Origin: Rebecca billardiae RCC1528
Taxonomy: Eukaryota > Protista > Haptophyta
Length of the DNA stretch: 64,000 nt
Direction: 5' to 3'
NCBI GenBank assembly: GCA_965240325.2
Contig: OZ251253.1
Location: 372,001-436,000 of the forward strand
Both the position numbers and the translations under genes were made by a program. Positions 9,677 through 24,624 of this stretch are shown piece by piece (position 1 is the first letter of the stretch; the number at the start of each line of letters is the position of its first letter). The notes under the pieces are model-generated. The model ran no database searches. It was not told the origin of the DNA and saw only the letters and a list, made by a program, of their open reading frames with translations.

Positions 9677-9714
<38 letters not shown>
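9677..9714. repeat. (AAT)n microsatellite
   Basis: Directly visible in an AT-rich island between convergent genes. Confidence 0.9.
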
Positions 9715-9715
<1 letters not shown>

Positions 9716-10137: not shown

Positions 10138-11857
10138 TCATCCGTGCCGCAGCAATTGGCTCTCGAGCGTGCGCGTGTACTCGAGCTGCGCCTGCGCACG
10201 CGATGCAGGCCCGTCGGCGTCTGTGCTGCTGCGCCGGCAGTCCGGGGAGGTGGGGTGTGGACTGGGTCAGTACCAAGTGAGACTGGGTAGCTTGGTGCAG
10301 CGTGCTGGGCTGCTGGCTGGCGCAACAGTCGCACCGCGCGTGCAGGCATGGGCGGCGCTGCAACGGCAAGATGCAGCGCACCTGGAGCCAGCGTCCGCCA
10401 CCTCGGCGCTCAGCACCTGGCGCAGCACGCGCACGCGCGCAGGGTCCGCCACGTGCTCCGCCACGCGCTCGGCCGCCTGCAGCCACGCGCGCACGCCGCG
10501 CAGCTCGGCCTGCAGCCGCTCGACTAAACACGTGCGCGCATGCAGCTGCATCTTCAGCTCGACGATCATCTCCACCGCAGCGGCAGCCTCGGGAGTCTCG
10601 CCACTGTGAGCGGGCAGCCCGTCAAGGAGCAGCGTGTGGGTAAGGGTGATCAGCGCCGGTCACAAGCGTCGCGAGGAGCGGCGGCGGCTCAGCACCGCTC
10701 TCGCCGGCTGTGTCGGCCAGCGTGTCCGCGGGCGCACAAGCAGCCGCCTCCGCACGCGCACCTGCTGCCGAGTCAATCCCAGCGCTGGCAGGCGCAGGAT
10801 GCTCGGTGGAGGGCGGCGTGGCGGGCTGCGCGTGTGCAGGAGCTGGCTGCACCGCAACAGCGGCAGCGGCTGGGCCTTGCTCAGCCACGCGTGCAGAAGG
10901 GCGGCGGGCAGGCGGCGGCTGCTCGATGGCGGGCTCCGCTGCTGCTGGTCTCTGCGCGGCCACGCTCGTGTATTTGCGTGTCACGCAGCGCTCGTTGAGG
11001 TCGCGCTCGTCAGCCGTGGGGAAGTTGAGCAGCTTGATGCCCACCAGGAGGTGCTCGCGCACGAGTGCATCGTACGCGCGCGCGGCCTCCTCCGCCGTGG
11101 CGCATGTGCCGGTACATACACGCTTCCCCTTGTGACAGACAGCTCCTTGCCATGGTCGTGGGCCCGCCTTGCTGCTGGAATTACAGGTTATCCCCACAAA
11201 GCCGTGGCTCGAGGCCTGTGCGGCGCGACCGGCCTGCAGCTCGAGCTCGCGCTCGTGCGAGGACGGGAAGTTGAGCCGCTTCACGCCGACGAGGCCGTTC
11301 TCGCGCACGAGCGCGTCGTACGCGTGTGCCGCCTCGGCGGCAGTCGCCCGGCCTCCGGGCGCGTAGAAGATGTCGCCCTTGTGCTGTACTTTTGCATACC
11401 ACCGCCTCACGTGTGCAGCGTAGTTCACGCCAAGGAACTCGGAAGGTGAGACGTCGTCCACGCAGGCGGGCTCCGCGCGCTCAGCGCCGCCTGCAACCAC
11501 CGTCTCCGCGTCATCAACCTCGCCGTCCTCCTCCTGGTCGCAGCGCAGGTCAGCATCACGCGGCCGTGCGTCGGTCGTGCCAGACGCCATCCGCTGGGTA
11601 GCGTGTGCGGCGAGCAGCGCGTGCACCGCGCTGGCCCCTTTGAGCCGGCCGCCACGTGACTCGAACACCATCGAGTGCCTGGCCCTCTTGTTCGCGCCTT
11701 CAGCCTCGGGTGCGCTCGGCACTGGGAGGTCCGCGGCACCGTCAGCGTTGGAGCCGCCGGGGTCGAGCTCGAGCTTCGCCGACGTAGCCAGAGCCGTAGC
11801 CGTTTGTATCTGACTGGACGCGGGTGCGCGGCTACCACTCTCTTCGGCGCGCTTCAT
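10138..11857 (-). pseudogene. Double-AP2 domain gene, copy 1 (frameshifted before the conserved coiled-coil tail)
   Basis: Two AP2-like domains (FLGV..W..ATAAEAAHAYD..RLNFP; FVGI..W..TAEEAARAYD..LNFP). A 1-nt insertion creates TGA at 10622-10624, and the conserved tail continues in another frame. Terminal exon 10228-10138. Confidence 0.75.
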
Positions 11858-12541
11858 GGCGTGCTGAGCCTCAAGGAGAGCGTCCTCCCCGAGCTCGCCG
11901 AGCCGCCCGAGCGCCCATGCGTCCGGAGCCGTCCGCCTGACCGCCTCGGAATTCCGGATTTGCATGACCGCCTCGAAACCGCGCAGTCTGCAGACCCGGA
12001 CCTACGCCCCGGACACCCCCCCCGCCTCGGTGGGGGTTGGTCCGGTACGGTCCGGCTGCAGACTGCGAAACCGCGGGCTGAGCGCATCGGCAGAGCTACC
12101 GCAACGTCTTGCACTGCTAAGAGTCTTGCAGGGCAGCCCCGCCTGCACCCGGAGTGCTACGAGGGGCACATCCGTCGACCGGACAGTCGGCACCCGCGCA
12201 GCTGCTTCGGCCTCGGGCCCAATCGCCATTGCCCATTCAATCGGCCGGGGGCTTGGCCTCGTCGCTCGCGAACCTTGATGCGCCTCACCGCCCACAATAC
12301 TACAGCTAGTTGCTGGCTACGTCACCAAGCATCAGCATCAGTTATTCATCAGCTACATAGTACATACAGCAGTACGCCAGACCCTCTGACCGCCTGACCG
12401 ACAGGCTGCCGACGCTGATCAATAGACTATAGAGTCTGCGACTCCTCGTCTGAGCCTCTCGGACGCACGTCGGCGGGGCCGATGTGCAGCAGCTTTCGCC
12501 GCCACTTCTGCTGCCGTGCGGTGCCGCCGCGTGACCGAGAC

Positions 12542-14270
12542 TCATCCGTGACGCAGCAGCTGGCGCTCGAGCGTGCGCGTGTACGCGAGCTGCGCCTGCG
12601 CACGCGATGCCGACCCGTCAGCGTCAGTGCTGCTGCGCCGGCAGCCAGGGGAGGTGGGATCGGTAGGCTGGGTCAGTACTGCATGTCAGGTGAGAGAGTC
12701 TCAGAGTTGTGCAGCGTGCTGGGCTGCTGGCTGGCGCAACAGTCGCACCGCGCGCGCATGCGTGCGCGGCGCGGCCTGGGCGAGCTGTGGCGCACCTGGA
12801 GCCAGCGCCAGCCACCTCTGCGCTCAGCACCTGCCGCAGCACGCGCACGCGCGCAGGGTCCGCCACGTGCTCCGCCACGCGCTCGGCCGCCTGCAGCCGC
12901 GCGCACACGCCGCGCAGCTCGGCCTGCAGCCGCTCGACTAAACTCTCGCGCGCATGCAGCTGCATCTTCAGCGTGACGATCGTCTCCACCGCAGCAGCAG
13001 CCTCGGGTGTCTCGCCGCTGTGAGCGGGCGGCGCTGTGTGAGCGACGTGTGCGCAAGGGTGCTCGACGCTCGTCACGAGCGTCGCGAGGAGCGGTGGCGG
13101 CTCAGCACCGCTCTCGCCGGGTGTGTCGGCCAGCGTGTCCGCGGGCACAGGCAGCACGGCCGCCTCCGCGTGTGCACCTGCGGCCGAGCTGAGGCCATCG
13201 CTGGCAGGCGCAGGGAGCTCGGTGGAGGGCGGCATGGCGGGCTGCGGGTACACAGCAGCTGGCCGTGTGGCATCAGCAGCATCGGAGGGCCCGTGCTCAG
13301 CCGCGCGTGCAGAAGGGCGGCGGGCAGGCGGCGGCTGCTCGATGGCCGGCTCCGCCGCTGCTGGCCTCAGCGCTGCCTTGATGGTGCAACTGTGATGCGC
13401 CCGGCAGCGCTCGTTGAGGTCGCGCTCGTCCGGCGTGGGGAAGTTGAGCCATTTGATGCCCACCAGGTGACGCTTGCGCACAAAGGCATCGTAAGCATGC
13501 GCGGCCTCCTCTGCTGTGGCATAGCTGCCGGTTAGAAGTTTCTTGCCGTTGTGACGAAAAAGTCCTCGCCATGGTCGTGGACCCGCCTTTGCCCTGGAAT
13601 CGCAGGTAATCCCCACAAAGCCGTGGCTCGAGGCGTGCGCGGCGCGGCTCGCCTGCAGCTCAAGCTCGCGCTCGTGCGGGGACGGGAAGTTGAGCCGCTT
13701 CACGCCCACGAGGCCCTTCTCGCGCACGAGCGCGTCATACGCGCGCGCCGCCTCGGCGGCAGTCGCCGCCAGGCGTCCGGGCGCGTGGTGTTTGACGCCC
13801 TTGTGCTGTATTTGTGCAGCCCACCGCCCCCTATTTGCAGCGTAGTATACGCCAACAAAGTCGGAAGGCGACGCATCGCCCATGCCGGCGGGCTGCCCGC
13901 GCTCATCCCCGCCTGCAACCACCGTCTCCGCGTTCTCGTCCTCGCCGTCCTCCTCCTGGTCGCAGGGCGAGGCCCCGTCACGCGGCCGAGCGTCGGTCGA
14001 GCCAGACGCCATCCGCTGGGCAGCTTGGGCGGCGAGTAGCGCGTGCACCGCGCTGGCCCCTTTGAGCCAGCCGCCACGCGACTCGAGCACCATCGAGTGC
14101 CTGGCCCTCTTGTTCGCGCCAGCAGCCTCGGGCACGGTTGCTACCGCGGTATCGTCAGCGTTGGAGCCGCCGGTGTCGAGCTCGCGCTGCACCGACGGGG
14201 TTGAAGTCGTCGCCACCCGCATCGGACTGGACGGGGGCGCGCGGCTGCCATTCTCTCCAGCGCGCTTCAT
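12542..14270 (-). CDS. Double-AP2 domain DNA-binding protein, copy 2 (intron ~12795-12633)
   Basis: ATG of MKRAGE at 14270. Two AP2 domains and conserved tail LKMQLHARESLVERLQAEL. Spliced terminal exon SSTDADG..YTRTLERQLLRHG*. Confidence 0.8.
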
Positions 14271-14416
14271 GGCGTGTTGAGCCTCGGGCGCGGAGGAGGG
14301 CGCGGCGACCGAGATTGCGCCGACCGTCCTTCCGCATGCGCCCGGATCGGCACCTCGAAATCCGGGTTGAAAACTGAATGACCGCTCCCGGTGGACTTGC
14401 AACTCTGCATCGGACG

Positions 14417-15754
14417 ATGCCGCTCGCGTGGCCCGCGGTACCGCGGTGGGCACTGCTCGTCGCGGCGGCTTGGCTGCGGGGCGCGTGGGGTGTGGGCACG
14501 CCCATCCCAACGCCACCCCTCGTCTTCGCAAACGGCGTGGCGCCCACCGAGCCAGCGCCCAGCGCCGCGTGCAAGCCGCTCTCGCAGGCCGAGCGCGTGC
14601 GCTTTCAGGGCACGCCCGCCGCGCGCGCCGAGCTGCGCGCAACGCTCGAAGCGCTCGTCAACCGCACGATGCGCGGTCAGCCGTGCGCGCCCCGGATGAC
14701 GGTGCTCCAACGACCCGGCCTGAACGGGTACAACTTTGGCGAGGACCTCAGCGTCGAGCTCTTCCGCGCGCTGAGCGGCGGCGCCGAGCCTGACAAGCGC
14801 CACTTCAGCAAGCTCCTGCTAGGCGGCTCGACGCTCGAAGGCGCTCGGGTCGGGGACATCGTCGCCGGCGCGGGGTTCCGCCTCGCGCCGACGAGCGTCG
14901 TCAAACCCGACCCCGCGTGGGCGGACCTGCGCGTCACCTCCGTCCGCGGCCGCCTCAGCCGCGACCGCCTGCTCGCGCTCGGCGTGCGGCACGTGCCCGC
15001 CGTCTTTGGCGACCCCGCGCTGTTCGTGCCCGAGCTGCTGCCGTGGCTCCGCGGGCTGGCGCACGTGGGCGGCGGCGGCATCTGTCTGATGCCGCACATG
15101 ACGGACAAGCGGCTCAAGGTGCTCGGCTTGCTCTCCAAGCTGCGCGTGATCTCGTCCGTCGACCTTCCGCCCAAGGGCGTGCTGAACGAGCTGCTCGACT
15201 GCGACCTGCTGGTCACGTCCTCCCTGCATGGCCTCGTGGTGGCGGACGCGCTCGGCATGCCGTCTATGTTCGCGCACACGAGCTCGGAGGGGCTGAACGC
15301 GTACGCGGACTACCTCTCTGGCCTCGCGTTCAACGTGCGCCGACGCGCACCGCCTGGCGCCGACGGGCTACTCCACAGCATGGACATCTTCGGCTGGATG
15401 CTGATGCTGCCGTCAATGGGGGCGCCGCTACGCGCCGAGAAGGGCCGGGAGACGCTCGCGGCCGCGCGCGCCGCGTGCAGCGAGGGCGGCCTGCAGCCGC
15501 GCGTGAGCTTCCCGGACCGCGCGTGGATGGCGGTCCAGTACGTCACGGCCGTGCTGCCGGCCATGCGACTGGCCTGCGGGCTCGATCCCGATCCGGCGTG
15601 TCACGTGCCGGCTGAGGCGGCGACGTGCCCGTGCTGCGACAGCGAGCCGCCCATGCGCGTGGAGCTTGTCAAAAACGATACCTCGCAGCCTGCGAGCGAA
15701 TGCTCGTCCTTCTGGGGCTGCGTCGTCTCGTGGGCAGCAGGAGCGCATCAATGA
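14417..15754 (+). CDS. Polysaccharide pyruvyltransferase family protein (ExoV/GumL-like) with signal peptide
   Basis: NFGEDLS, GGSTL, SVRGRLSR..L, FGDPAL, LMPH and VTSSLHGLVVADALGMP motifs. Intronless. Confidence 0.85.
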   Translation: MPLAWPAVPRWALLVAAAWLRGAWGVGTPIPTPPLVFANGVAPTEPAPSAACKPLSQAERVRFQGTPAARAELRATLEALVNRTMRGQPCAPRMTVLQRPGLNGYNFGEDLSVELFRALSGGAEPDKRHFSKLLLGGSTLEGARVGDIVAGAGFRLAPTSVVKPDPAWADLRVTSVRGRLSRDRLLALGVRHVPAVFGDPALFVPELLPWLRGLAHVGGGGICLMPHMTDKRLKVLGLLSKLRVISSVDLPPKGVLNELLDCDLLVTSSLHGLVVADALGMPSMFAHTSSEGLNAYADYLSGLAFNVRRRAPPGADGLLHSMDIFGWMLMLPSMGAPLRAEKGRETLAAARAACSEGGLQPRVSFPDRAWMAVQYVTAVLPAMRLACGLDPDPACHVPAEAATCPCCDSEPPMRVELVKNDTSQPASECSSFWGCVVSWAAGAHQ

Positions 15755-16387
15755 GCAGACAGCCGGACGCGGGCGCGCGGCTGTCCCTCTCTCCGGCACG
15801 CTTGCTCATGGCGTGCTGGTGAGACGAGGAGAACGCGGCAACCGCGATCGCGCGCCGGCCGTCCTATCGCAGTGGCCTCATTGCGTCCGGCACCTATGCA
15901 GACCCGTCGGCGTCAGCGAACAGGCCTCAGCGCTGCTTAGCGCCGGCAGTCGTCAGCGGCCCACCTGCTCGAAATCCGGATGAAAGCGCAGCTAGCATTG
16001 ACTACACTGCATTATGAACAGCTACTCGTCGGGATTCTGCTGCTCAGCCGACTTGGTTAGCTAGTGACTTGCCAACCGTCGTCGCCCGGGCAGCCCGAGC
16101 GCGCACGTGGCCTCGGCTTCGTCGGCGACCGCCGGGACAATTCAAATTGGGCATTGGCGCCTCACCACACCGCCCCCAACCAACTAATCATCATCAATGC
16201 GACTGCGGCGTGGCTCAGCGTTCGTCGTCATAGCAGTAGTAGTACTTCAGACCGAGCCGCCACTGACATCATCATAATAGCAGGCGCGGGATGACTCCAG
16301 TGTCTAGCTGAGCCACCCGGATGAAGCACGCGTGGGCCAACCGCAGCCTCTGCTTTCCGGCTGCTGAACTTCATCACCGAGATTAAA

Positions 16388-18136
16388 TCATCCGTGGCGC
16401 AGCAGGAGCTGGCTCTCGAGCGTGCGCGTGTACGCGAGCTGCGCCTGCGCACGCGATGCTGACCCGTCAGCGTCAGTGCTGCTGCGCCAGCAGTCAGGGG
16501 ACGATGTGGGGTGCGAATTGGGTCAGTGCTGCCAAGCCTAGACGACACGGGTGCAGCGCAGTTGTGGGCGGGCGTTGGAAGTGCATGCGCATGCGTGGGC
16601 GGCACGGCATGGGCGTGCGGCAGCGCACCTGAAGCCAGCGCCCGCCACCTCGGCGCTCAGCACCTGGCGCAGCACGCGCACGCGCGCAGGGTCAGCCACG
16701 TGCTCCGCGACGCGCTCGGCCGCCTGCAGCCGCGCGCGCACGCCGCGCAGCTCGGCCTGCAGCCGCTTGACTAAACACGTGCGCGCATGCAGCTGCATCT
16801 TCAGCTCGACGATCATCTCCACCGCAGCGGCAGCCTCGGGTGTCTCACCGCTGCGAGCGGGCGGCGCTGTGCGGGCGTCGGATGGGCAAGGGTGCTCGGC
16901 GCTCGGCACGAGCGTTGCGAGGAGCGGCGGCAGCTCATCACCGCTCTCACCTGTGGTGCCGGCCAGCGTGTCCGCAGGCGCAGAAGCAGCCGCCTCCGCA
17001 CGTGCAGCTGCGGCCGAGCCGACGCCAGCGCTGGAGGGCGACGGGTGCTCGGTGGAGGGCGGCATGGCAGGCTGCAACTGGTGCAAGGCACCTGGCTGCG
17101 TGGCATCGGCGGAGTCGGAGGACCCCGGCTCAGCCACTCGCGGAGAAGGGCAGCGTGCAGGCGGCGGCTGCTCGATGGTGGGCTCCGCTGCTGCTGGTCT
17201 GTGCGCGGCCGTGATGGTGCACCTGTTGAATCGCACCTGGCAGCGCTCGTTGAGGTCGCACTCGTCTGGCGTGGGGAAGTTGAGCCGTTTGGTCCCCACT
17301 AGGAGGTGCTCGCGCACGAGGGCATCGTACGCACGCGCGGCCTCCTCCGCCGTGGCAAATGTGCCGGTGTTAAGTTGCTTCCCGTTGTCACGGACAAATC
17401 CCCGCCATGTTCGTGGACCACCCTTTCTGCTGGAGTTGCAGCAAACTCCCACAAAGCCGTGGCTCGAGGCCTGTGCGGCGCGACTGGCCTGCAGTTCGAG
17501 CTCGCGCTCGTGCGAGGACGGGAAGTTGAGCCGCTTCACGCCGACGAGGCCGTTCTCGCGCACGAGCGCGTCGTACGCGTGTGCCGCCTCGGCGGCAGTC
17601 GCCCGGCCTCCGGGCGCGTAGAAGATGTCGCCCTTGTGCTGTACTTTTGCATACCACCGCAGCGCGCGGTAGTGCACGCCAAGGAACACAGAAGGCGAAG
17701 CATCGCCCATGCCGGCGGGCTCCTCGCGCTCACCCCCGCCTCCGACCACCGTCTCCGCGTCATCGTCCTCGCCGTCCTCCTCCTGGTCGCAGCGCAGGTC
17801 AGCATCACGCGGCCGAGCGTCGGTCGTGCCAGACGCCACCGGCTTGGCAGCGGCGAGCAACGCGCCGTCAACGTGCGATGGGCTGGCGCCATTGGTCCCA
17901 TGATCTCGCGCCTCGAGCACCATCGAGTGCCTGGCCCTCTTGTTCGCGCCAGCAGCCTCAGGCGCGCTCGGCGCGGGCAAGTCGGTGGCATCGTCGGCGC
18001 GAGCGTCAGCGTTGGAGCCGCCGAGGTCGAGCTCGCGCTGCGCCGACGGAGCCGAAGCTGGTCGCATGAAGCCTGTCACCATCCGCATCAGACTGTACAC
18101 GGGCGTGCGGCTGTCGCCCTCGCCGGCGCGCTTCAT
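16388..18136 (-). CDS. Double-AP2 domain DNA-binding protein, copy 3
   Basis: Same architecture as copy 2. Open frame 18136 to ~16629, GTGCGC donor, terminal exon ending TGA 16388-16390. Confidence 0.8.
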
Positions 18137-18621
18137 GGCGTGCCGAGCCTCGGGCGCGAGGAGCGCGCGGCGACCGTGAACGCGCCGTCAGTCAGGTCGG
18201 TCCGGAGGGGGAGCCATCACGGAAATCCGGTGCATCAGGGTCCGCTCCGGCTGGTCTAGAACTGCAGCCGCTTCCACTAGTTCCAGCCCGCGGCCGCGGC
18301 CGCGACAGCGGCAACGGCGCGGCTGTCCCCAGCGTTGACTATGACGCCTACTCGTCGCCATCAGCAGGCGCTACTGCTGAATGCACTATCCGGATACCCG
18401 ATGACCGCGCAGTTACTCTAACTTCATCTTATCAGTGGACGCCCGTCGGCGGGCTGCACTCGGTGCACCGCACTCGCCCGGCCCGCGCGCCGTCGTGAGA
18501 CGTGAATTCGGTGAGTGAGCCAATCGCCAATCGGGGCCCGGGCGTGCCTGCTTGAACCGCGCGCGGGCGCAGATAGTGATACGCTTTCGGCCTTTTCGGT
18601 ACCAGCTTCAAGTCTCAGGAC

Positions 18622-20374
18622 TCATCCGCGAAGAAGCTGGCGTTCAAGCGTGCGCATGTACGCGAGCTGTGCCTGTCTGTGCAGCAGGTGATGCCAGCCC
18701 GTCGCCTTCTATGCGGCTGCACCAGCAGCCAGGGCGGAGGGCAGTTGCGTGCGTGCGGGCCAAGCGGCGGGCCGGGACGCAGGGATGGGGGGGGTGCAGA
18801 CTGGGTCAGCGCCACGCGTACTGGCAGGCGCAATCGAGTGGTCATGCGCGCGCGCATGCGTGGGGGGCGCGGCGCTGGCGAGCTGCAGCGCACCTGGAGC
18901 CAGCGCCCGCCACCTCGGCGCTCAGTACCTGGCGCAGCACGCGCATGCACGCAGGGTCCGCCACGTCCTCAGCCACGCGCTCGGCCGCCTGCAGCCGCGC
19001 GCGCACGCCGCGCAGCTCGGCCTGCAGCCGCTCGACTAAACTCTCGTGCGCATGCAGCTGCATCTTCAGCTCGACGATCATCTCCACCGCAGCAGCAGCC
19101 TAGGCAGTCTCCCCCGTGCAAGCTGGCGGCACGGTGTGGGCGTCGTGTGGGCAAGGGTGCTTGGAGCGGGTGTCGAGCGTTGCGAGGAGCGGCGGCGGTC
19201 CCACGCCGCTCTCGCCGGCTATGTCGGCCAGCGCGTCCGCTGGCGCAGGCAGCACGGCCACCTCTGCACGCGCACCTGCTGCCGAGCCGATGCCAGCGCT
19301 GGAGGGCGACGGGTGCTCGGTGGAGGGCGGCATGGCGAGCTGCGCGTGCTTGGGAGCTGGCTGCACTGCATCAGCGGTAGCGGCTGGGCCTTGCTCGGCC
19401 ACGCGTGCAGAAGGGCTGCGGGCAGGCGGCGGCTGCTCGATGGCGGGCTCCGCTGCTGCTGGTCTGTGCACGGCCACGCTCGGGTACTTGTGTGTCACGC
19501 AGCGCTCGTTGGGGTCGAGCTCGTCCGGCGTGGGGAAGTTGAGCCGCTTGATGCCCACCAGGTGACTCTTGCGCACAAGGGCATCGTACGCGTGCGCGGC
19601 CTCCTCTGCTGTGGCATAGCTGCCGGTTTTAAGTTTCTTGCCGTTGTGACGAAAAAGTCCTCGCCATGGTCGTGGACCCGCCTTGCTGTTGGAATCACAG
19701 GTAATCCCCACAAAGCCGTGGCTCGAGGCGTGCGCGGCGCGGCTCGCCTGCAGCTCAAGCTCGCGCTCGTGTGAGGACGGGAAGTTAAGACGCTTCACGC
19801 CGACGAGGCCGTTCTCGCGCACGAGCGCGTCGTACGCGTGTGCCGCCTCGGCGGCAGTCGCCCGGCCTCCGGGTGTGCGGTAGACGCAGTTCTTGTGATA
19901 CACTTTTGCATACCATCGGCACATTTTTTCATGGTAGTACGCGCCAAAGAAATCGGAACGCGACACGGTGCCCATGCCGGCGGGCTGCCCGCTTCCAGCC
20001 CCGCCTCCAACCACCGTCTCCGCGTTCTCGTCCTCGCCGTCTGTCTCCTGCTTGCAGGGCGAGGCCCCGTCTGGCGGCCGTGCGCTGGTCGTCTCAGCAG
20101 CAACCGGCTGAGAAGCGTGTGCGGCGAGCAGCGCGTGTACTGCGCTGGCACCTGTGTGCCAGCCGCCACGCGACTCGAGCACCATCGAGTGCCTCGCCCT
20201 CTTGTTCGCGCCAGCAGCCTCGGGCACGGTTGGCGCCGGCAAGTCAGCAGCATCGGCAGTGTTGGAGCCGCCGGGGTCGAGCTCGCGCTGCACCGACGGA
20301 GCCGTGGTCGAAGCCAGCATCCGCATCGGACTGGACGCAGGCGCGCGGCGGTCACCCTCTCCGGTGCGCTTCGT
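18622..20374 (-). pseudogene. Double-AP2 domain gene, copy 4 (disrupted)
   Basis: Homologous start ATG is ACG (20372-20374). GAG->TAG premature stop at 19100-19102. An out-of-frame insertion lies in the terminal exon. Both AP2 domains are still open. Confidence 0.75.
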
Positions 20375-20870
20375 GGCGTGCTGAGCCTCGGGCGCGAGGA
20401 GAAAGGCGGCGACGGAGATCGCGCCGACCGCCCTTCCGCAATAATAAGCGCCCATGCGGATTGCGTCCGGTTGTGCCCGCATTCACCAATATATTTGGCG
20501 AAATCCCGACGCGACTACTACGAATAATAATCCGGAGCGCAAGGGCCCTTGCGGAGCGGATGCACAGCCCGGGTGGCGGCAGCACCGACGAACGGGCCGC
20601 AGCGATTGTCACCACCAGCCGGCCACTTTCCGAACTTCACTAACTTGCTCATTGTACATTGCGGCTGGTGAGCACTGAGGCAGCCTGCTCTCGCCAAGCG
20701 GCTACTACAGAAGAGTCTGCTACACGCAGAAGGCAGTCTCAGGTACTTCAGCAGACAGCTCCGCTGATCAACCGCAGTGTCAGTGACTCCTCGTCCGAGC
20801 CTCGTCCCGGAAGCACGGCATGCATGCCGCCCGCGTGCGCAGCAGCTTCTTCGCTGAGCTTTGCTGAGCC

Positions 20871-22559
20871 TCATCCGCGCAGCAGCTGGCTCTCGAGCGT
20901 GCGCGTGTACTCGAGCTGCGCCGGCGCATGCGATGCTGGCCCGTCGGCGTCGGTGCTGCTGCGCCGGCGGTCAGGGGAGGCGGGGTGCGGACTGGGTCAG
21001 TACCAAGTGAGAGAGGCGGTGCAGCGTGCTGGGCTGCTGGCTGGCGCAACAGTCGCACCGCGCGCCGGCGCGCGCATGCGTGGGCGGCGACATGGGCGAG
21101 CTGCAGCGCACCTGGAGCCAGCGTCCGCCACCTCGGCGCTCAGCACCTGGCGCAGCACGCGCACGCGCGCAGGGTCCGCCACGTGCTCCGCCACGCGCTC
21201 GGCCGCCTGCAGCCGCGCGCGCACGCCGCGCAGCTCGGCCTGCAGCCGCTCGACTAAACTCTCGCGCGCATGCAGCTGCATCTTCAGCTCGACGATCGCC
21301 TCCACCGCAGCGGCAGCCTCGGGGGTCTCGCCGCTGGCAGCTGGCGACCCGGTGTGACCACCGCCATGCGGGTAAGGGTGCTCGACGCTCGTCACGAGCG
21401 TCGCGAGGAGCGGCGGCGGCTCAGCACCGCTCTCACCGGCAGTGTCGGCCAGCGTGTCCGTGGGAACAGGCGGCGCACCCGCGTCCACACGCGCACCTGC
21501 TGCCGAGCCGATGCCAGCGCTGGCAGACGCAGGGTGCTCGATGGAGGGTGGCATGGCGAGCTGCGCGTGCGCAGGAGCTGGCTGCACCGCATCGGCGGCA
21601 GCGGCTGGCCCCTGCTCAGCCGCGCGTGCAGAAGGGCGGCGTGAAGGCGGCGGCTGCTCGGAGGCGGGCTCCGCTGCTGCTGGTCTGTGCGCAGCCACGC
21701 TCGTGTACTTGCGCTTCACGCAGCGCTCGTTACGCTCGCGCTCGTCCGGCGTGGGGAAGTTGAGCCGTTTGATGCCCACCAGGTGACGCTTGCGCACGAG
21801 TGCATCGTACGCGCGCGCGGCCTCCTCCGCCGTGGCATGTATGCCGGCATAAAGCTTCTTACCGTTGTGATTGGCCTTTCCCACCCATGGCCGTGACCCT
21901 GAGGCACTGGAGGTAATCCCCACAAAGCCGTGGCTCGAGGCATGTGCGGCGTGGCTGGCCTGCAGCTCGAGCTCGCGCTCGTGCGGGGACGGGAAGTTAA
22001 GACGCTTCACGCCGACGAGGCCCTTCTTGCGCACGAGCGCGTCGTACGCGCGCGCAGCCTCGGCGGCAGTCGCGAACATTCCAGATGCGTGGTATTGGAC
22101 GCTGTTTTGTGATACTCTTGCGCGCCACCGCCCCGTCTGTGCATGGTACCACACGCCAAGGAACTCGGAAGGCGACACGTCGCCCATGTTGGCAGGCTGC
22201 TCGCGCTCAGCCCCACCTCCAACCACCGTCTCCGCGGCATCGCCCTCGCCCTCCGTCTCCTGGTTGTAGGGCGTGGCCGCATCTCGCGGCCAAGCGTCGG
22301 TCGAGCCGGACGCCACCCGCTGGGCAACCTGTGCCGCGAGCAGCGCGTGCACCGCGCTGGCGCCTTTGGTCCGGCCGCCACGCGACTCGAGCACCATCGA
22401 GTGCCTCGCCCTCTCGTTCGCGCCTTCAGCCTCGCGCACGCCTGACGCTGGCAAGGCCGTGGCGTCGTCAGCGCGAGCGTCGGCGTTGGAGCCGCCGAGA
22501 CCGAGCTCGCGTGATGCCGACGGAGCCGACGCCGGTGGCATGCAACTCGCCGCCATCAT
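20871..22559 (-). CDS. Double-AP2 domain DNA-binding protein, copy 5
   Basis: Open frame with two AP2 domains and the conserved tail. Terminal exon ..LEYTRTLESQLLRG*. Confidence 0.8.
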
Positions 22560-22919
22560 CCTTCAATAATCCGCGCCGATCATTCGCGCATGCTCGATTT
22601 GTTCACGTTGTTCACTGTGAATTCACTGTCAATTTCCAAATTGACTTGTGTGGGGCCGGTGCACACGAGCCGAGCTGGGCAGCCGCTCCGCCAGTGAGTA
22701 GGGGGCCCAGCTGCGTCAGGCTGCCGCACAGCGGCCGTCGCGTACGCTGAGCTGCCGCTGCCCAAAGTCGGTCAGCCAGTTTAATGCTGGAGACCATGCT
22801 ACGGTATGCTGGGCATGGACGGGTGATCGTCGAAAGGACGCATCGCTGATGATGCCTAATTGCGGCCCGGTCTGGGTGTGTCAAGTCATCTGCTGCTCAC
22901 TGCGCCGCCGTGGCATGCA

Positions 22920-24624
22920 CTAAGACGGCGGCGCAGCATGGCTGCGAAGAAGCTGGCGTTCGAGCGTGCGCGTGTACTCGAGCTGTGCGCGAGCAGGTGA
23001 TGCCAGCCCGTCTGCGTCTGTGCTACTGCACCAGCAGCCAGGGCGCAGGGCAGTTGCGTGCGGGCCACACAGGCAGGGAGGAAGATGAGGGGTCATCGCC
23101 AAGCACACTGGTAGGCGCAGTTGTGGTAGCGCATGCACAAGAGCGGGCAGCGCGGCGCCGCAGAGCGGCCACGCACCTGGAGCCAGCGCCCGCCACCTCG
23201 GCGCTCAGCACCTGGCGCAGCACGCGCACGCGCGCAGGGTCAGCCACGTGCTCCGCAACGCGCTCGGCCGCCTGCAGCAGCGCGCGCACACCGCGCAGCT
23301 CGGCCTGCAGCCGCTCGACTAAACTCTTGCGCGCATGCAGCTGCATCTTCAGCTCGACGATCGCCTCCACCGCAGCGGCAGCCTCAGGAGTCTCGCCGTC
23401 GTGCGTGGGCGGCGCGATGTGAGCGTCATGTGGGTAAGTGTGCTCGGCGCTGGTCACGAGCGTCGCGAGGAGCGGCGGCGGCTCAGCACCGCTCTCACCG
23501 GCAGTGTCGGCCAGCGTGTCCGCGGGAACAGGCTCACCCGCCTCCGCATGCGCACCTCCGGCAGAGCCGACGCCAACGCTGGCAGGCGCATGGTGCTCCG
23601 TGGAGGGCAGCGTGCCGGGCTGCGCAAGTCCGGCAGCTGGCTGCACCGCATCGACAGCAGCGGCTGGGCCTTGCTCCACCGCGCGTGCAGAAGGGCGGCG
23701 GGCAGGCGGCGGCTGCTCGGAGGCGGGCTCCGCTGCTGCTGGTCTCTGCACGGCATTGATGGTGCACCTGCGCTTCACCGGGCAGCGCTCGTTGAGGTCG
23801 CGCTCGTCTGGCGTGGGGAAGTTGAGCCGTTTGATGCCCACCAGGTGACGCTTGCGCACGAGTGCATCGTACGCGCGCGCGGCCTCCTCCGCGGTGGCAT
23901 GTGTGCCGGTGCGTACACGCTTATAGTTGTGAGAGACAGCTCCTTGCCATGGTCGTGGGCCCGCCTGGCTGCTGGAATTACAGGAAATCCCCACAAAGCT
24001 GTGGCTCGAGGCCCGCGAGGCGCGACCTGCCTGCACCTCGAGCTCGCGCTCGTGCGGGGACGGGAAGTTGAGACGCTTCACGCCGACGAGGCCCTTCTCG
24101 CACACGAGCGCGTCATACGCGCGTGCCGCCTCGGCGGCAGTCGCGAACAATCCAGATGCGTGGCATTGGACGCCCTTGTGTGATACTCTTGCGCGCCACC
24201 GCCCCGTCTGTGCATGGTAGTGCACGCCAACGAAACCAGAACGCGACACGTCGCCCATGCCGGTGGGCTGCCCGCGCTCGTCCCCACCTCCAACCACCGT
24301 CTCCGCGGCATCACCCTCGCCCTCCGTCTCCTGGTTGTAGGGCTTGGCCGCATCTCGCGGCCAAGCGTCGGTCGAGCCAGACGCCACCAGCTGGGCAGCC
24401 TGTGCGGCGAGCAGCGCGTGCACCGCGCTGGCGCCTTTGGTCCGGCCGCCACGCGACTCGAGCACCATCGAGTGCTTGGCCTTCTTGTTCGCGCCTTCAG
24501 CCTCGCGCTCGCTTGGCGCTGGCAGGTCCGTGGCGTCGTCAGCGCGAGCGTCGGCGTTGGAGCCGCCGAGACCGAGCTCGCGTGAAGCCGACGGAACCGA
24601 CGCCGGTGGCATGCAACTCGCCAT
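22920..24624 (-). CDS. Double-AP2 domain DNA-binding protein, copy 6
   Basis: Open frame with two AP2 domains and the conserved tail. Terminal exon SSTDADGLAS..LEYTRTLERQLLRSHAAPPS*. Confidence 0.8.

Follow-up and report, generated by a model that had tools for sequence, protein, structure and literature searches.

We found that the alga Rebecca billardiae RCC1528 carries 13 neighboring copies of a gene for a predicted DNA-binding protein with two AP2 domains, which have exchanged short pieces with each other and which selection has driven apart at positions corresponding to those that touch DNA in plant AP2 proteins. Thus, the paralogs probably read different DNA sequences, although both DNA binding and differences in specificity are inferred from sequence and predicted structure. 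Six copies (c1–c6) lie on the minus strand, at positions 10138–24624, of the 64,000-nucleotide stretch that we analyzed (hereafter the window; positions 372,001–436,000 of contig OZ251253.1, assembly GCA_965240325.2). Seven more (U1–U7) lie on the plus strand at contig positions 345861–360364, 12–26 kb before the window, such that the two arms of the cluster point towards each other. The features of the arm in the window are as follows:

10267–11857 (minus): c1, double-AP2 gene with the tail out of frame; ORF 10622–11965 plus a tail frame at 10267–10614; conserved ATG at 11855–11857
10622–10636 (minus): c1 lesion, one extra base relative to the other copies, followed by an in-frame TGA at 10622–10624
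11351–11440 (minus): c1 AP2-1 β-sheet segment, hypervariable (codon alignment columns 138–167), here 100% identical to c3
11099–11203 (minus): c1 AP2-2 β-sheet segment, hypervariable (columns 224–258), nearest to U6 and c6
10381–10596 (minus): c1 tail module, conserved as DNA but not in frame with the AP2 part
12624–14270 (minus): c2, intact double-AP2 gene with tail; conserved ATG at 14268–14270
13773–13862 (minus): c2 AP2-1 β-sheet segment
13518–13622 (minus): c2 AP2-2 β-sheet segment, near-identical to that of c4
12795–13010 (minus): c2 tail module
14378–15754 (plus): intervening host gene, polysaccharide pyruvyl-transferase-like (Pfam PF04230, 33.2 bits, cut-off 25.3), head to head with c2
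16538–18136 (minus): c3, intact double-AP2 gene with tail, ORF of 532 aa
17606–17689 (minus): c3 AP2-1 β-sheet segment, with a two-codon deletion in the β1–β2 loop
17354–17458 (minus): c3 AP2-2 β-sheet segment
16628–16843 (minus): c3 tail module
18842–20482 (minus): c4, double-AP2 gene truncated before the tail (ORF 19100–20482), with the conserved ATG replaced by ACG
19100–19102 (minus): c4 premature TAG (GAG in the other copies); the same stop is present in U7
19865–19954 (minus): c4 AP2-1 β-sheet segment
19613–19717 (minus): c4 AP2-2 β-sheet segment
18893–19108 (minus): c4 tail remnant behind the stop, with several changes seen in no other copy
20997–22559 (minus): c5, intact double-AP2 gene with tail, ORF of 520 aa
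22077–22166 (minus): c5 AP2-1 β-sheet segment
21834–21929 (minus): c5 AP2-2 β-sheet segment, with a three-codon deletion
21111–21326 (minus): c5 tail module
23023–24624 (minus): c6, intact double-AP2 gene with tail, ORF of 533 aa
24148–24237 (minus): c6 AP2-1 β-sheet segment, with predicted strands at residues 134–137, 142–149 and 152–155
23896–24000 (minus): c6 AP2-2 β-sheet segment
23176–23391 (minus): c6 tail module, with predicted helices at residues 413–459 and 463–499

The preliminary description of this locus, a six-gene tandem array with near-invariant AP2 helices, linker and tail but independently assorting β-strand segments, is confirmed as an observation. The six paralogs are 68–75% identical to c1 in protein and 69–80% to c6, and every motif that had been assigned to particular copies is present in them. 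In domain 1, WYAKVQHKGDIFYAPGG is found in c1 and c3 (with c4 related), WAAQIQHKG in c2, and YHAQTGRWRARVS in c5 and c6. In domain 2, c1 and c6 group together, as do c2 and c4, whereas c3 and c5 are each alone. The mean pairwise amino-acid difference among the six copies is 0.50 in the AP2-1 β region and 0.38 in the AP2-2 β region, compared to 0.09–0.14 in the helices, linker and tail and about 0.3 in the N-terminal and middle regions, which is far beyond chance. However, three corrections are needed. First, while the tail is conserved as DNA in all six copies, it is not in frame in two: c1 has one extra base near 10627–10633 (a +1 frameshift evident in DNA alignments, with tblastn changing frame between 10614 and 10628), and c4 has the TAG. 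Second, the array is interrupted between c2 and c3 by the pyruvyl-transferase-like gene. Third, it is only one arm of the 13-copy cluster.

Each protein displays, in order, a disordered N-terminal part with a KRAR basic patch and an acidic stretch, two plant-type AP2 domains joined by a conserved linker of about 26 residues, a disordered Pro/Ala-rich middle, and a helical C-terminal module. Against the Pfam AP2 profile (PF00847, gathering score 33.3 bits), c6 scores 38.3 and c5 36.2, while c2 (30.1) and c3 (18.1) fall below the cut-off, and c1 and c4 have no hit at E ≤ 0.01; all six align to each other across the domain. Sequence searches against the PDB recovered WRI1, ERF096 and ERF1, albeit weakly (E 0.002 to 0.4). 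An AF2 model of c6 (pLDDT 81) predicts two β-β-β-α modules, with strands 15–18, 23–30 and 33–36 packed on helix 44–57 in the first domain and the same again in the second, i.e., the three-stranded antiparallel sheet and single helix of the AP2 fold. The top Foldseek hits are WRI1 on DNA (E 2.6 × 10−5), TEM1 and 1GCC, with a TM score of 0.64 on the 1GCC chain but only 0.33 over both domains.

A word-based protein search gave three weak hits, and a metagenome scan returned only single AP2 domains at 29–49% identity. An exhaustive profile search found 1881 AP2 relatives, many of which match profile positions of about 120–263 in one stretch. The best of these scored 140 bits and matched only the double-AP2 core, and none of the 150 best carries the tail. 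The tail itself has no Pfam family, and an atlas feature search with it stayed at 0.82, which is chance level; it is, however, a helical module shared with distant AP2 paralogs on other chromosomes. A scan of the region against Rfam found nothing, and a tandem-repeat scan found only two short simple repeats, both outside the array.

Several lines of evidence show that the copies are mosaics. A sliding-window nearest-neighbor analysis recovered a patchwork of partners with 100% identical tracts. The PHI test gave z = −14.3, with 0 of 1000 permutations as low, and 8 of 55 pairs share significant tracts of 40–230 nt, including U6–c1, U6–c3 and U3–c1 between the arms. Within the window, c2 and c4, whose AP2-2 β segments are near-identical, agree over a run of 35 consecutive polymorphic sites (p < 0.0005). 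AU tests rejected every segment's tree on nearly every other segment's data: the AP2-1 β data reject the AP2-2 β tree (p = 2.7 × 10−5), and the reverse test gives p = 4.6 × 10−39, although the trees of these short segments are poorly resolved. A simple palindrome was ruled out because the best partners between the arms (c1–U6, c3–U1 and c4–U7) are not in mirror order.

Codon models with segment-specific trees showed positive selection only in the AP2 β-sheets. Under M0, ω is 1.71 and 0.92 in the two β segments, compared to 0.14–0.23 in the helices and linker (0.14 in the linker) and 0.31–0.80 elsewhere. The M2a versus M1a likelihood ratio (LRT) is 66 for the AP2 domains and 65 for the β segments (ω about 4), but only 1.95, 0.44 and 1.10 for the N-terminal, middle and tail regions. 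Columns fixed in advance as homologs of the AtERF1 DNA-contact residues, without regard to their variability, have ω 2.6–4.2 (above 1 at p = 4 × 10−8 to 4 × 10−17), and all 13 copies have a different contact-residue combination. Trees congruent across segments and the lack of a dN excess in the β strands had been named beforehand as outcomes that would count against the preliminary reading; instead, the trees are incongruent and dN exceeds dS in the β strands. In c6, the selected residues are V132, H135, H137, Q139, R144, R146, S148, Q153, H155 and F160 in domain 1, and S214, A229, S231, R238, T241 and R259 in domain 2. The result holds with intact copies only, with the six window copies only (LRT 20.6, p = 3 × 10−5), with the upstream seven only, and with segment-specific codon frequencies. 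These codon models are our own implementation rather than PAML or HyPhy, but were checked against IQ-TREE likelihoods and by simulation: in 40 data sets simulated under M1a the largest LRT was 6.07. A per-site grid test is weak on its own, with 21 sites at p < 0.1 being no more than expected by chance among 490 codons, although 9 of them fall in the 65 β-segment codons. The register of β3 relative to ERF1 rests on the predicted hairpin and not on coordinates.

We interpret the locus, with fair confidence, as a two-arm cluster of lineage-specific transcription-factor-like genes. In this view, the family evolves by birth and death, with duplication, an in-frame fusion, and loss of the tail in some copies. 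Frequent short-tract non-allelic gene conversion, within and between arms, would keep the helices, linker and tail nearly uniform and move β-sheet segments from copy to copy, while diversifying selection acts on the outward face of the three-stranded sheet of both domains, which corresponds to the DNA-contact residues of AtERF1. The architecture, the predicted AP2 fold, the mosaic history and the ω above 1 at contact-homologous sites emerge directly from our analysis. In contrast, that the proteins bind DNA, that the paralogs differ in specificity, and that the shared tail serves pairing or partner recruitment are inferences.

The earlier interpretation, a conversion-driven repertoire of DNA specificities on a constant effector tail, reminiscent of KRAB-ZNF clusters and possibly targeting mobile or viral DNA, is thus supported only in part. 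The short-tract conversion, the reshuffling of the two β-sheet segments and the excess of amino-acid change confined to the strands that read DNA in solved AP2/ERF structures are supported. The constant effector tail is less so: the tail is conserved and homogenized (pS 0.10 against 0.16–0.29 in the other regions), but it is lost in 2 of the 6 copies here and in 4 of the 13, suggesting that part of the array may be decaying, and it matches no known effector domain. We found no evidence supporting the targeting of mobile or viral DNA.

The cluster can be compared with four known systems. It shares with the plant AP2/ERF superfamily, especially the double-AP2 (APETALA2/ANT/WRI1) type, the predicted sheet-plus-helix fold present twice with a conserved linker, and the GV, RW, A.AYD and LNFP motifs, with WRI1 bound to DNA as the best structural match. 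However, the similarity is weak (Pfam scores at or below the cut-off and 21–33% identity in the Foldseek alignments), the N-terminal, middle and tail regions are unrelated, the organism is an alga and not a plant, and the basic DNA-contact residues that plants conserve (ERF1 R150, R152, R162, R170, W172) are here the most variable positions. With KRAB zinc-finger clusters and PRDM9 it shares the tandem clustering, concerted evolution by conversion or unequal exchange, positive selection focused on DNA-contact residues (here identified by homology), and a constant non-DNA-binding module. This is an analogy of evolutionary mode only: the fold is AP2 and not C2H2, Pfam finds only AP2 with no KRAB, SET or other known effector domain, the diversity lies between paralogous genes with two fixed domains and not in a variable number of fingers, and we found no link to transposons or recombination hot spots. 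The tandem ERF clusters of plants (CBF/DREB1 and the NIC2/ORCA/GAME9-type) are likewise local arrays of AP2-domain genes whose members can differ in DNA-binding preference, but these have a single AP2 domain and far less sheet-face variation, and our literature searches turned up no report of ω above 1 at their contact residues. Finally, the ApiAP2 proteins of apicomplexans also feature AP2 domains, often several per protein, in a non-plant protist lineage, but structural matches to PfAP2 domains are weak (3igm, E 0.67; 6sy0, E 0.59), and ApiAP2 genes are dispersed and are not near-identical tandem paralogs.

Among the alternatives, the one that survives best, though it remains unlikely on present evidence, refines our interpretation by naming a driver: the paralogs might be repressors that chase fast-changing selfish DNA (transposons, satellites or giant-virus DNA), with the shared tail recruiting a silencing partner. 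The evolutionary mode, namely a tandem cluster, conversion and ω of about 4 at contact-homologous sites, matches that of KZFP clusters and PRDM9, and preliminary sequence notes place a putative satellite and a putative primase-like fragment in the same window. Against this, nothing ties the genes to repeats, the neighbors being ordinary host genes (glycosyltransferase, OGFOD2-like, methyltransferase and pyruvyl-transferase); the tail matches no repressor domain; no target motif could be derived; and the acidic N-terminal stretch would suit an activator equally well. A similarly doubtful extension would see here an AP2-fold counterpart of the KRAB-ZNF/PRDM9 principle, an adaptive DNA-recognition repertoire in which conversion between two facing arrays recombines β-sheet reading heads and selection renews the contact residues in a conflict with transposons, satellites or giant viruses, while pairing of paralogs through the helical tail multiplies the number of specificities.

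It is improbable that the ω above 1 is an artifact of recombination, GC-biased conversion, misalignment or saturation. Recombination is pervasive, is known to inflate site-model tests, and within the 30–35-codon segments could still inflate the LRT. However, equally recombining control regions give LRTs of only 0.4–2, the a priori contact columns have elevated ω, and the simulated null is well behaved. The selected codons are 46% GC against about 72% for the gene, the opposite of what GC-biased conversion would give; pS is 0.29, so the sites are not saturated; the β segments have few indels; and the selected sites alternate along the strands, as one face of a sheet would. It is also improbable that the variable face binds something other than double-stranded DNA, such as RNA or a host or pathogen protein. 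Although DNA binding is inferred from homology alone and the similarity to plant AP2 is weak, every structural match of note is a DNA-bound AP2 domain, the varying residues are homologs of the ERF1 base-contact residues, and the substituted residues are mostly of the kinds that typically read DNA bases (R, K, H, Q, N, Y and S). Least likely is a decaying array of redundant or silent copies drifting under relaxed constraint, as might be suggested by the tail loss in c1, c4 and U7, the fusion of U1 to U2 and the missing ATG of c4, because relaxation gives ω near 1 and not 4, the helices and linker of the same genes are under strong purifying selection, and the double-AP2 reading frame is open in all 13 copies.

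The 13 natural variants on one scaffold represent a ready-made set for working out an AP2 recognition code, and they raise the question of what drives such diversification in marine algae. Rapidly diversifying DNA-binding repertoires are known mainly from animal zinc-finger genes, where they mark genetic conflict. Here the same mode, combining a tandem cluster, homogenizing conversion and selection on the contact-homologous residues, appears in a different predicted fold and a distant eukaryotic lineage, where the positions that plants keep invariant for GCC-box reading would serve as the variable code.

The window is about 70% GC and lies at positions 372001-436000 of contig 37 in a genome of 72 Mb and 41 contigs. 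Within it, six paralogous open reading frames were found on the minus strand between positions 10138 and 24624:

10267-11857, minus strand: c1
12624-14270, minus strand: c2
16538-18136, minus strand: c3
18842-20482, minus strand: c4
20997-22559, minus strand: c5
23023-24624, minus strand: c6

The repeat unit is about 2.1-2.4 kb and runs from about 130 nt past the stop codon to the N-terminal coding region. Farther upstream, c1-c4 share one kind of 5' sequence and c5-c6 another. The approximately 130 nt past the stop codons (window 10138-10270, 12552-12686, 16401-16535, 20878-21012 and 22945-23079) are conserved among the copies at 67-93% identity, while the reading frames there differ, suggesting that this is probably a shared 3' untranslated part of the repeat unit. 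The spacing between c2 and c3 is longer (3.8 kb) because a plus-strand polysaccharide pyruvyl-transferase-like gene is embedded in the array at 14378-15754, head to head with c2. In contrast, the upstream arm of the locus shows no comparable gap in its copy spacing (2.1-2.7 kb). Just downstream of the array, 3' of c1, a perfect (AAT)13 microsatellite lies at 9677-9715 in an otherwise 70% GC region. The observation made in the preliminary description holds, with all the motif strings it listed being present in the copies to which it assigned them.

We then searched the genome in six frames and recovered seven further copies, U1-U7, on the plus strand at contig positions 345861-360364. These lie 12-26 kb before the window, so that the two arrays point towards each other across about 22 kb. 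The spacer holds ordinary genes, among them those coding for a GT64/GT1 glycosyltransferase and an OGFOD2-like oxygenase, while a methyltransferase-like gene follows c6. In the upstream arm, U1 and U2 are fused in frame into a single open frame of 1236 residues (contig 37, 344652-348359, outside the window): U1 stops just before its tail and runs straight into the N-terminal acidic region of U2, giving a four-AP2 protein with one tail, apparently made by an in-frame deletion or unequal exchange. More distant multi-AP2 paralogues (31-53% identity) lie on at least eleven other contigs. Other local clusters of multi-AP2 genes exist on contigs 13 (1623837-1639485), 36 (837561-844558) and 18 (88851-92564), some with the same C-terminal module, and one open frame of 1106 residues has many AP2 repeats.

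The double-AP2 frame is open in all 13 copies. c1 has one extra base and an early TGA at 10622-10624, whereas c4 has a TAG at 19100-19102 and has also lost the conserved ATG. U7 of the other arm carries the same TAG as c4, plus a 4-nt duplication (CTAG; contig 37, about 359611-359620). Thus, this tail-less allele is shared between the two arms, either by descent or by conversion.

The Pfam AP2 profile scores above the curated cut-off in c5 and c6 and below it in c2 and c3, and gives no hit in c1 and c4. The c6 core aligns weakly to WRI1, ERF096 and AtERF1 in the PDB, with the canonical ..GV..., RW.A and A.AYD register. An AlphaFold2 model of the core, built on 23 paralogues, has a mean pLDDT of 81 and shows two β-β-β-α modules. 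A Foldseek search ranked WRI1 on DNA first (E = 2.6e-5), followed by TEM1, with AtERF1 on DNA ranking tenth (E = 0.10, rmsd 2.8 Å over 64 alignment columns). A full-length model is disordered outside the AP2 domains except for the tail, which is predicted to form helices at residues 413-459 and 463-499.

Next, we investigated the history of exchange among the copies. First, sliding-window nearest neighbors change along every copy, and some tracts are 100% identical: for example, c1 and c3 over the AP2-1 sheet, c1 and U6 over the AP2-1 helix, U4 and U5 over the AP2-2 sheet, and U4 and U6 over the N-terminus. Second, the PHI statistic is 14 standard deviations below its permutation mean, with 0 of 1000 permutations as low. 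Third, a GENECONV-like run test found 8 of 55 pairs to be significant after Bonferroni correction, with tracts spanning 44-232 nt and three of the pairs joining the two arms. Fourth, in AU tests, each of seven blocks rejects almost all other blocks' trees: the AP2-1 sheet data reject the AP2-2 sheet tree at p = 2.7e-5, and the reverse test gives p = 4.6e-39. Thus, the independent assortment of the variable strands proposed in the preliminary description is correct, and identity at synonymous sites shows that this is exchange rather than convergence.

To study selection, we built a protein-guided codon alignment of all 13 copies, with the breaks masked, and fitted Goldman–Yang models using our own code, giving each of 14 segments its own IQ-TREE tree, although the short segments give weak trees. 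The segment ω was 1.71 for the AP2-1 sheet and 0.92 for the AP2-2 sheet, as against 0.18 and 0.23 for the helices, 0.14 for the linker, 0.47-0.80 for the N-terminal and middle parts, and 0.31-0.49 for the tail. The comparison of M2a against M1a yielded an LRT of 66 (p = 4e-15) for both AP2 domains and 65 for the two sheet segments (ω2 = 4.0, 39% of sites). In contrast, the LRT was only 1.95 for the N-terminal part, 0.44 for the middle part and 1.10 for the tail, even though these three control regions recombine as much as the sheets do. The signal survived every subset and setting tried: segment-specific codon frequencies (LRT 54), intact copies only (LRT 55), the upstream seven only (LRT 38) and the six window copies only (LRT 20.6, p = 3e-5). 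Forty data sets simulated under M1a gave a maximum LRT of 6.07. A per-site grid test on its own is not significant after multiple testing, although 9 of its 21 sites fall in the 65 sheet-segment codons.

We also examined a set of columns fixed beforehand as homologs of the AtERF1 contact residues. This set has an ω of 2.6 with the sequence register and 4.2 with the hairpin register; using β-1 and β-2 only, where there is no register ambiguity, ω is 3.9. All three are above 1, at p = 4e-8 to 4e-17. Of the contact residues, R150, R152, R170 and W172 are confirmed in PMC3602543. W154, E160 and R162 are reported to be contacts by Allen et al. 1998. The selected codons are 46% GC against about 72% for the gene, which argues against GC-biased conversion. 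Further, third-position GC is 0.48 at the selected codons and 0.65 in the other sheet codons, compared to 0.88-0.89 in the helix and linker segments and 0.75-0.86 in the rest of the gene. The sheet segments of all copies (e.g., window 11351-11440) use codons that are otherwise rare in this gene, which is consistent with rapid recent turnover.

Sites with a posterior above 0.9 map to alignment columns 140, 143, 145, 147, 152, 154, 156, 161, 163 and 169 in AP2-1, and 229, 244, 246, 253, 256 and 274 in AP2-2. Both domains are affected, not only one. They alternate along the strands, and between them lie conserved residues, namely Y, A, W, A, V and an aromatic residue in β-3. The model places two-residue turns between β-2 and β-3; with such turns, columns 152/154/156 and 161/163 face the same side of the sheet, and so do 244/246 and 251/253. 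By alignment, columns 143, 145, 147, 154 and 156 correspond to ERF1 R150, R152, W154, E160 and R162. All 13 copies differ in the combination of residues at these positions. While the mosaic history and the ω above 1 at these homologous columns are shown by our analysis, the assignment of this face as the DNA-contact face is an inference from secondary structure and homology, not from coordinates, and DNA binding by these predicted proteins is likewise inferred from sequence and predicted structure alone. The interpretation offered in the preliminary description, of a conversion-driven repertoire of DNA specificities on a constant effector tail, is partly supported, with the term "effector" being unproven.

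An exhaustive profile search found 1881 relatives, the best of which scored only 140 bits, with matches restricted to the double-AP2 core. A word-based protein search and a metagenome scan recovered no close kin, and our literature searches found no report of an AP2 array under positive selection at contact residues. The tail has no Pfam family and no meaningful neighbor in an atlas search, and none of the 150 best foreign relatives has it. The same module, a helix followed by a conserved VADP..VRVLRQ.LS.E motif, ends distant AP2 paralogues on contigs 36, 13 and 14. Synonymous divergence is lowest here (pS 0.10, against 0.16-0.29 in the other regions), which is consistent with the tail having undergone the strongest homogenization. 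It is therefore a family-level module of this genome, for which a pairing or partner-binding helix is the most economical guess.
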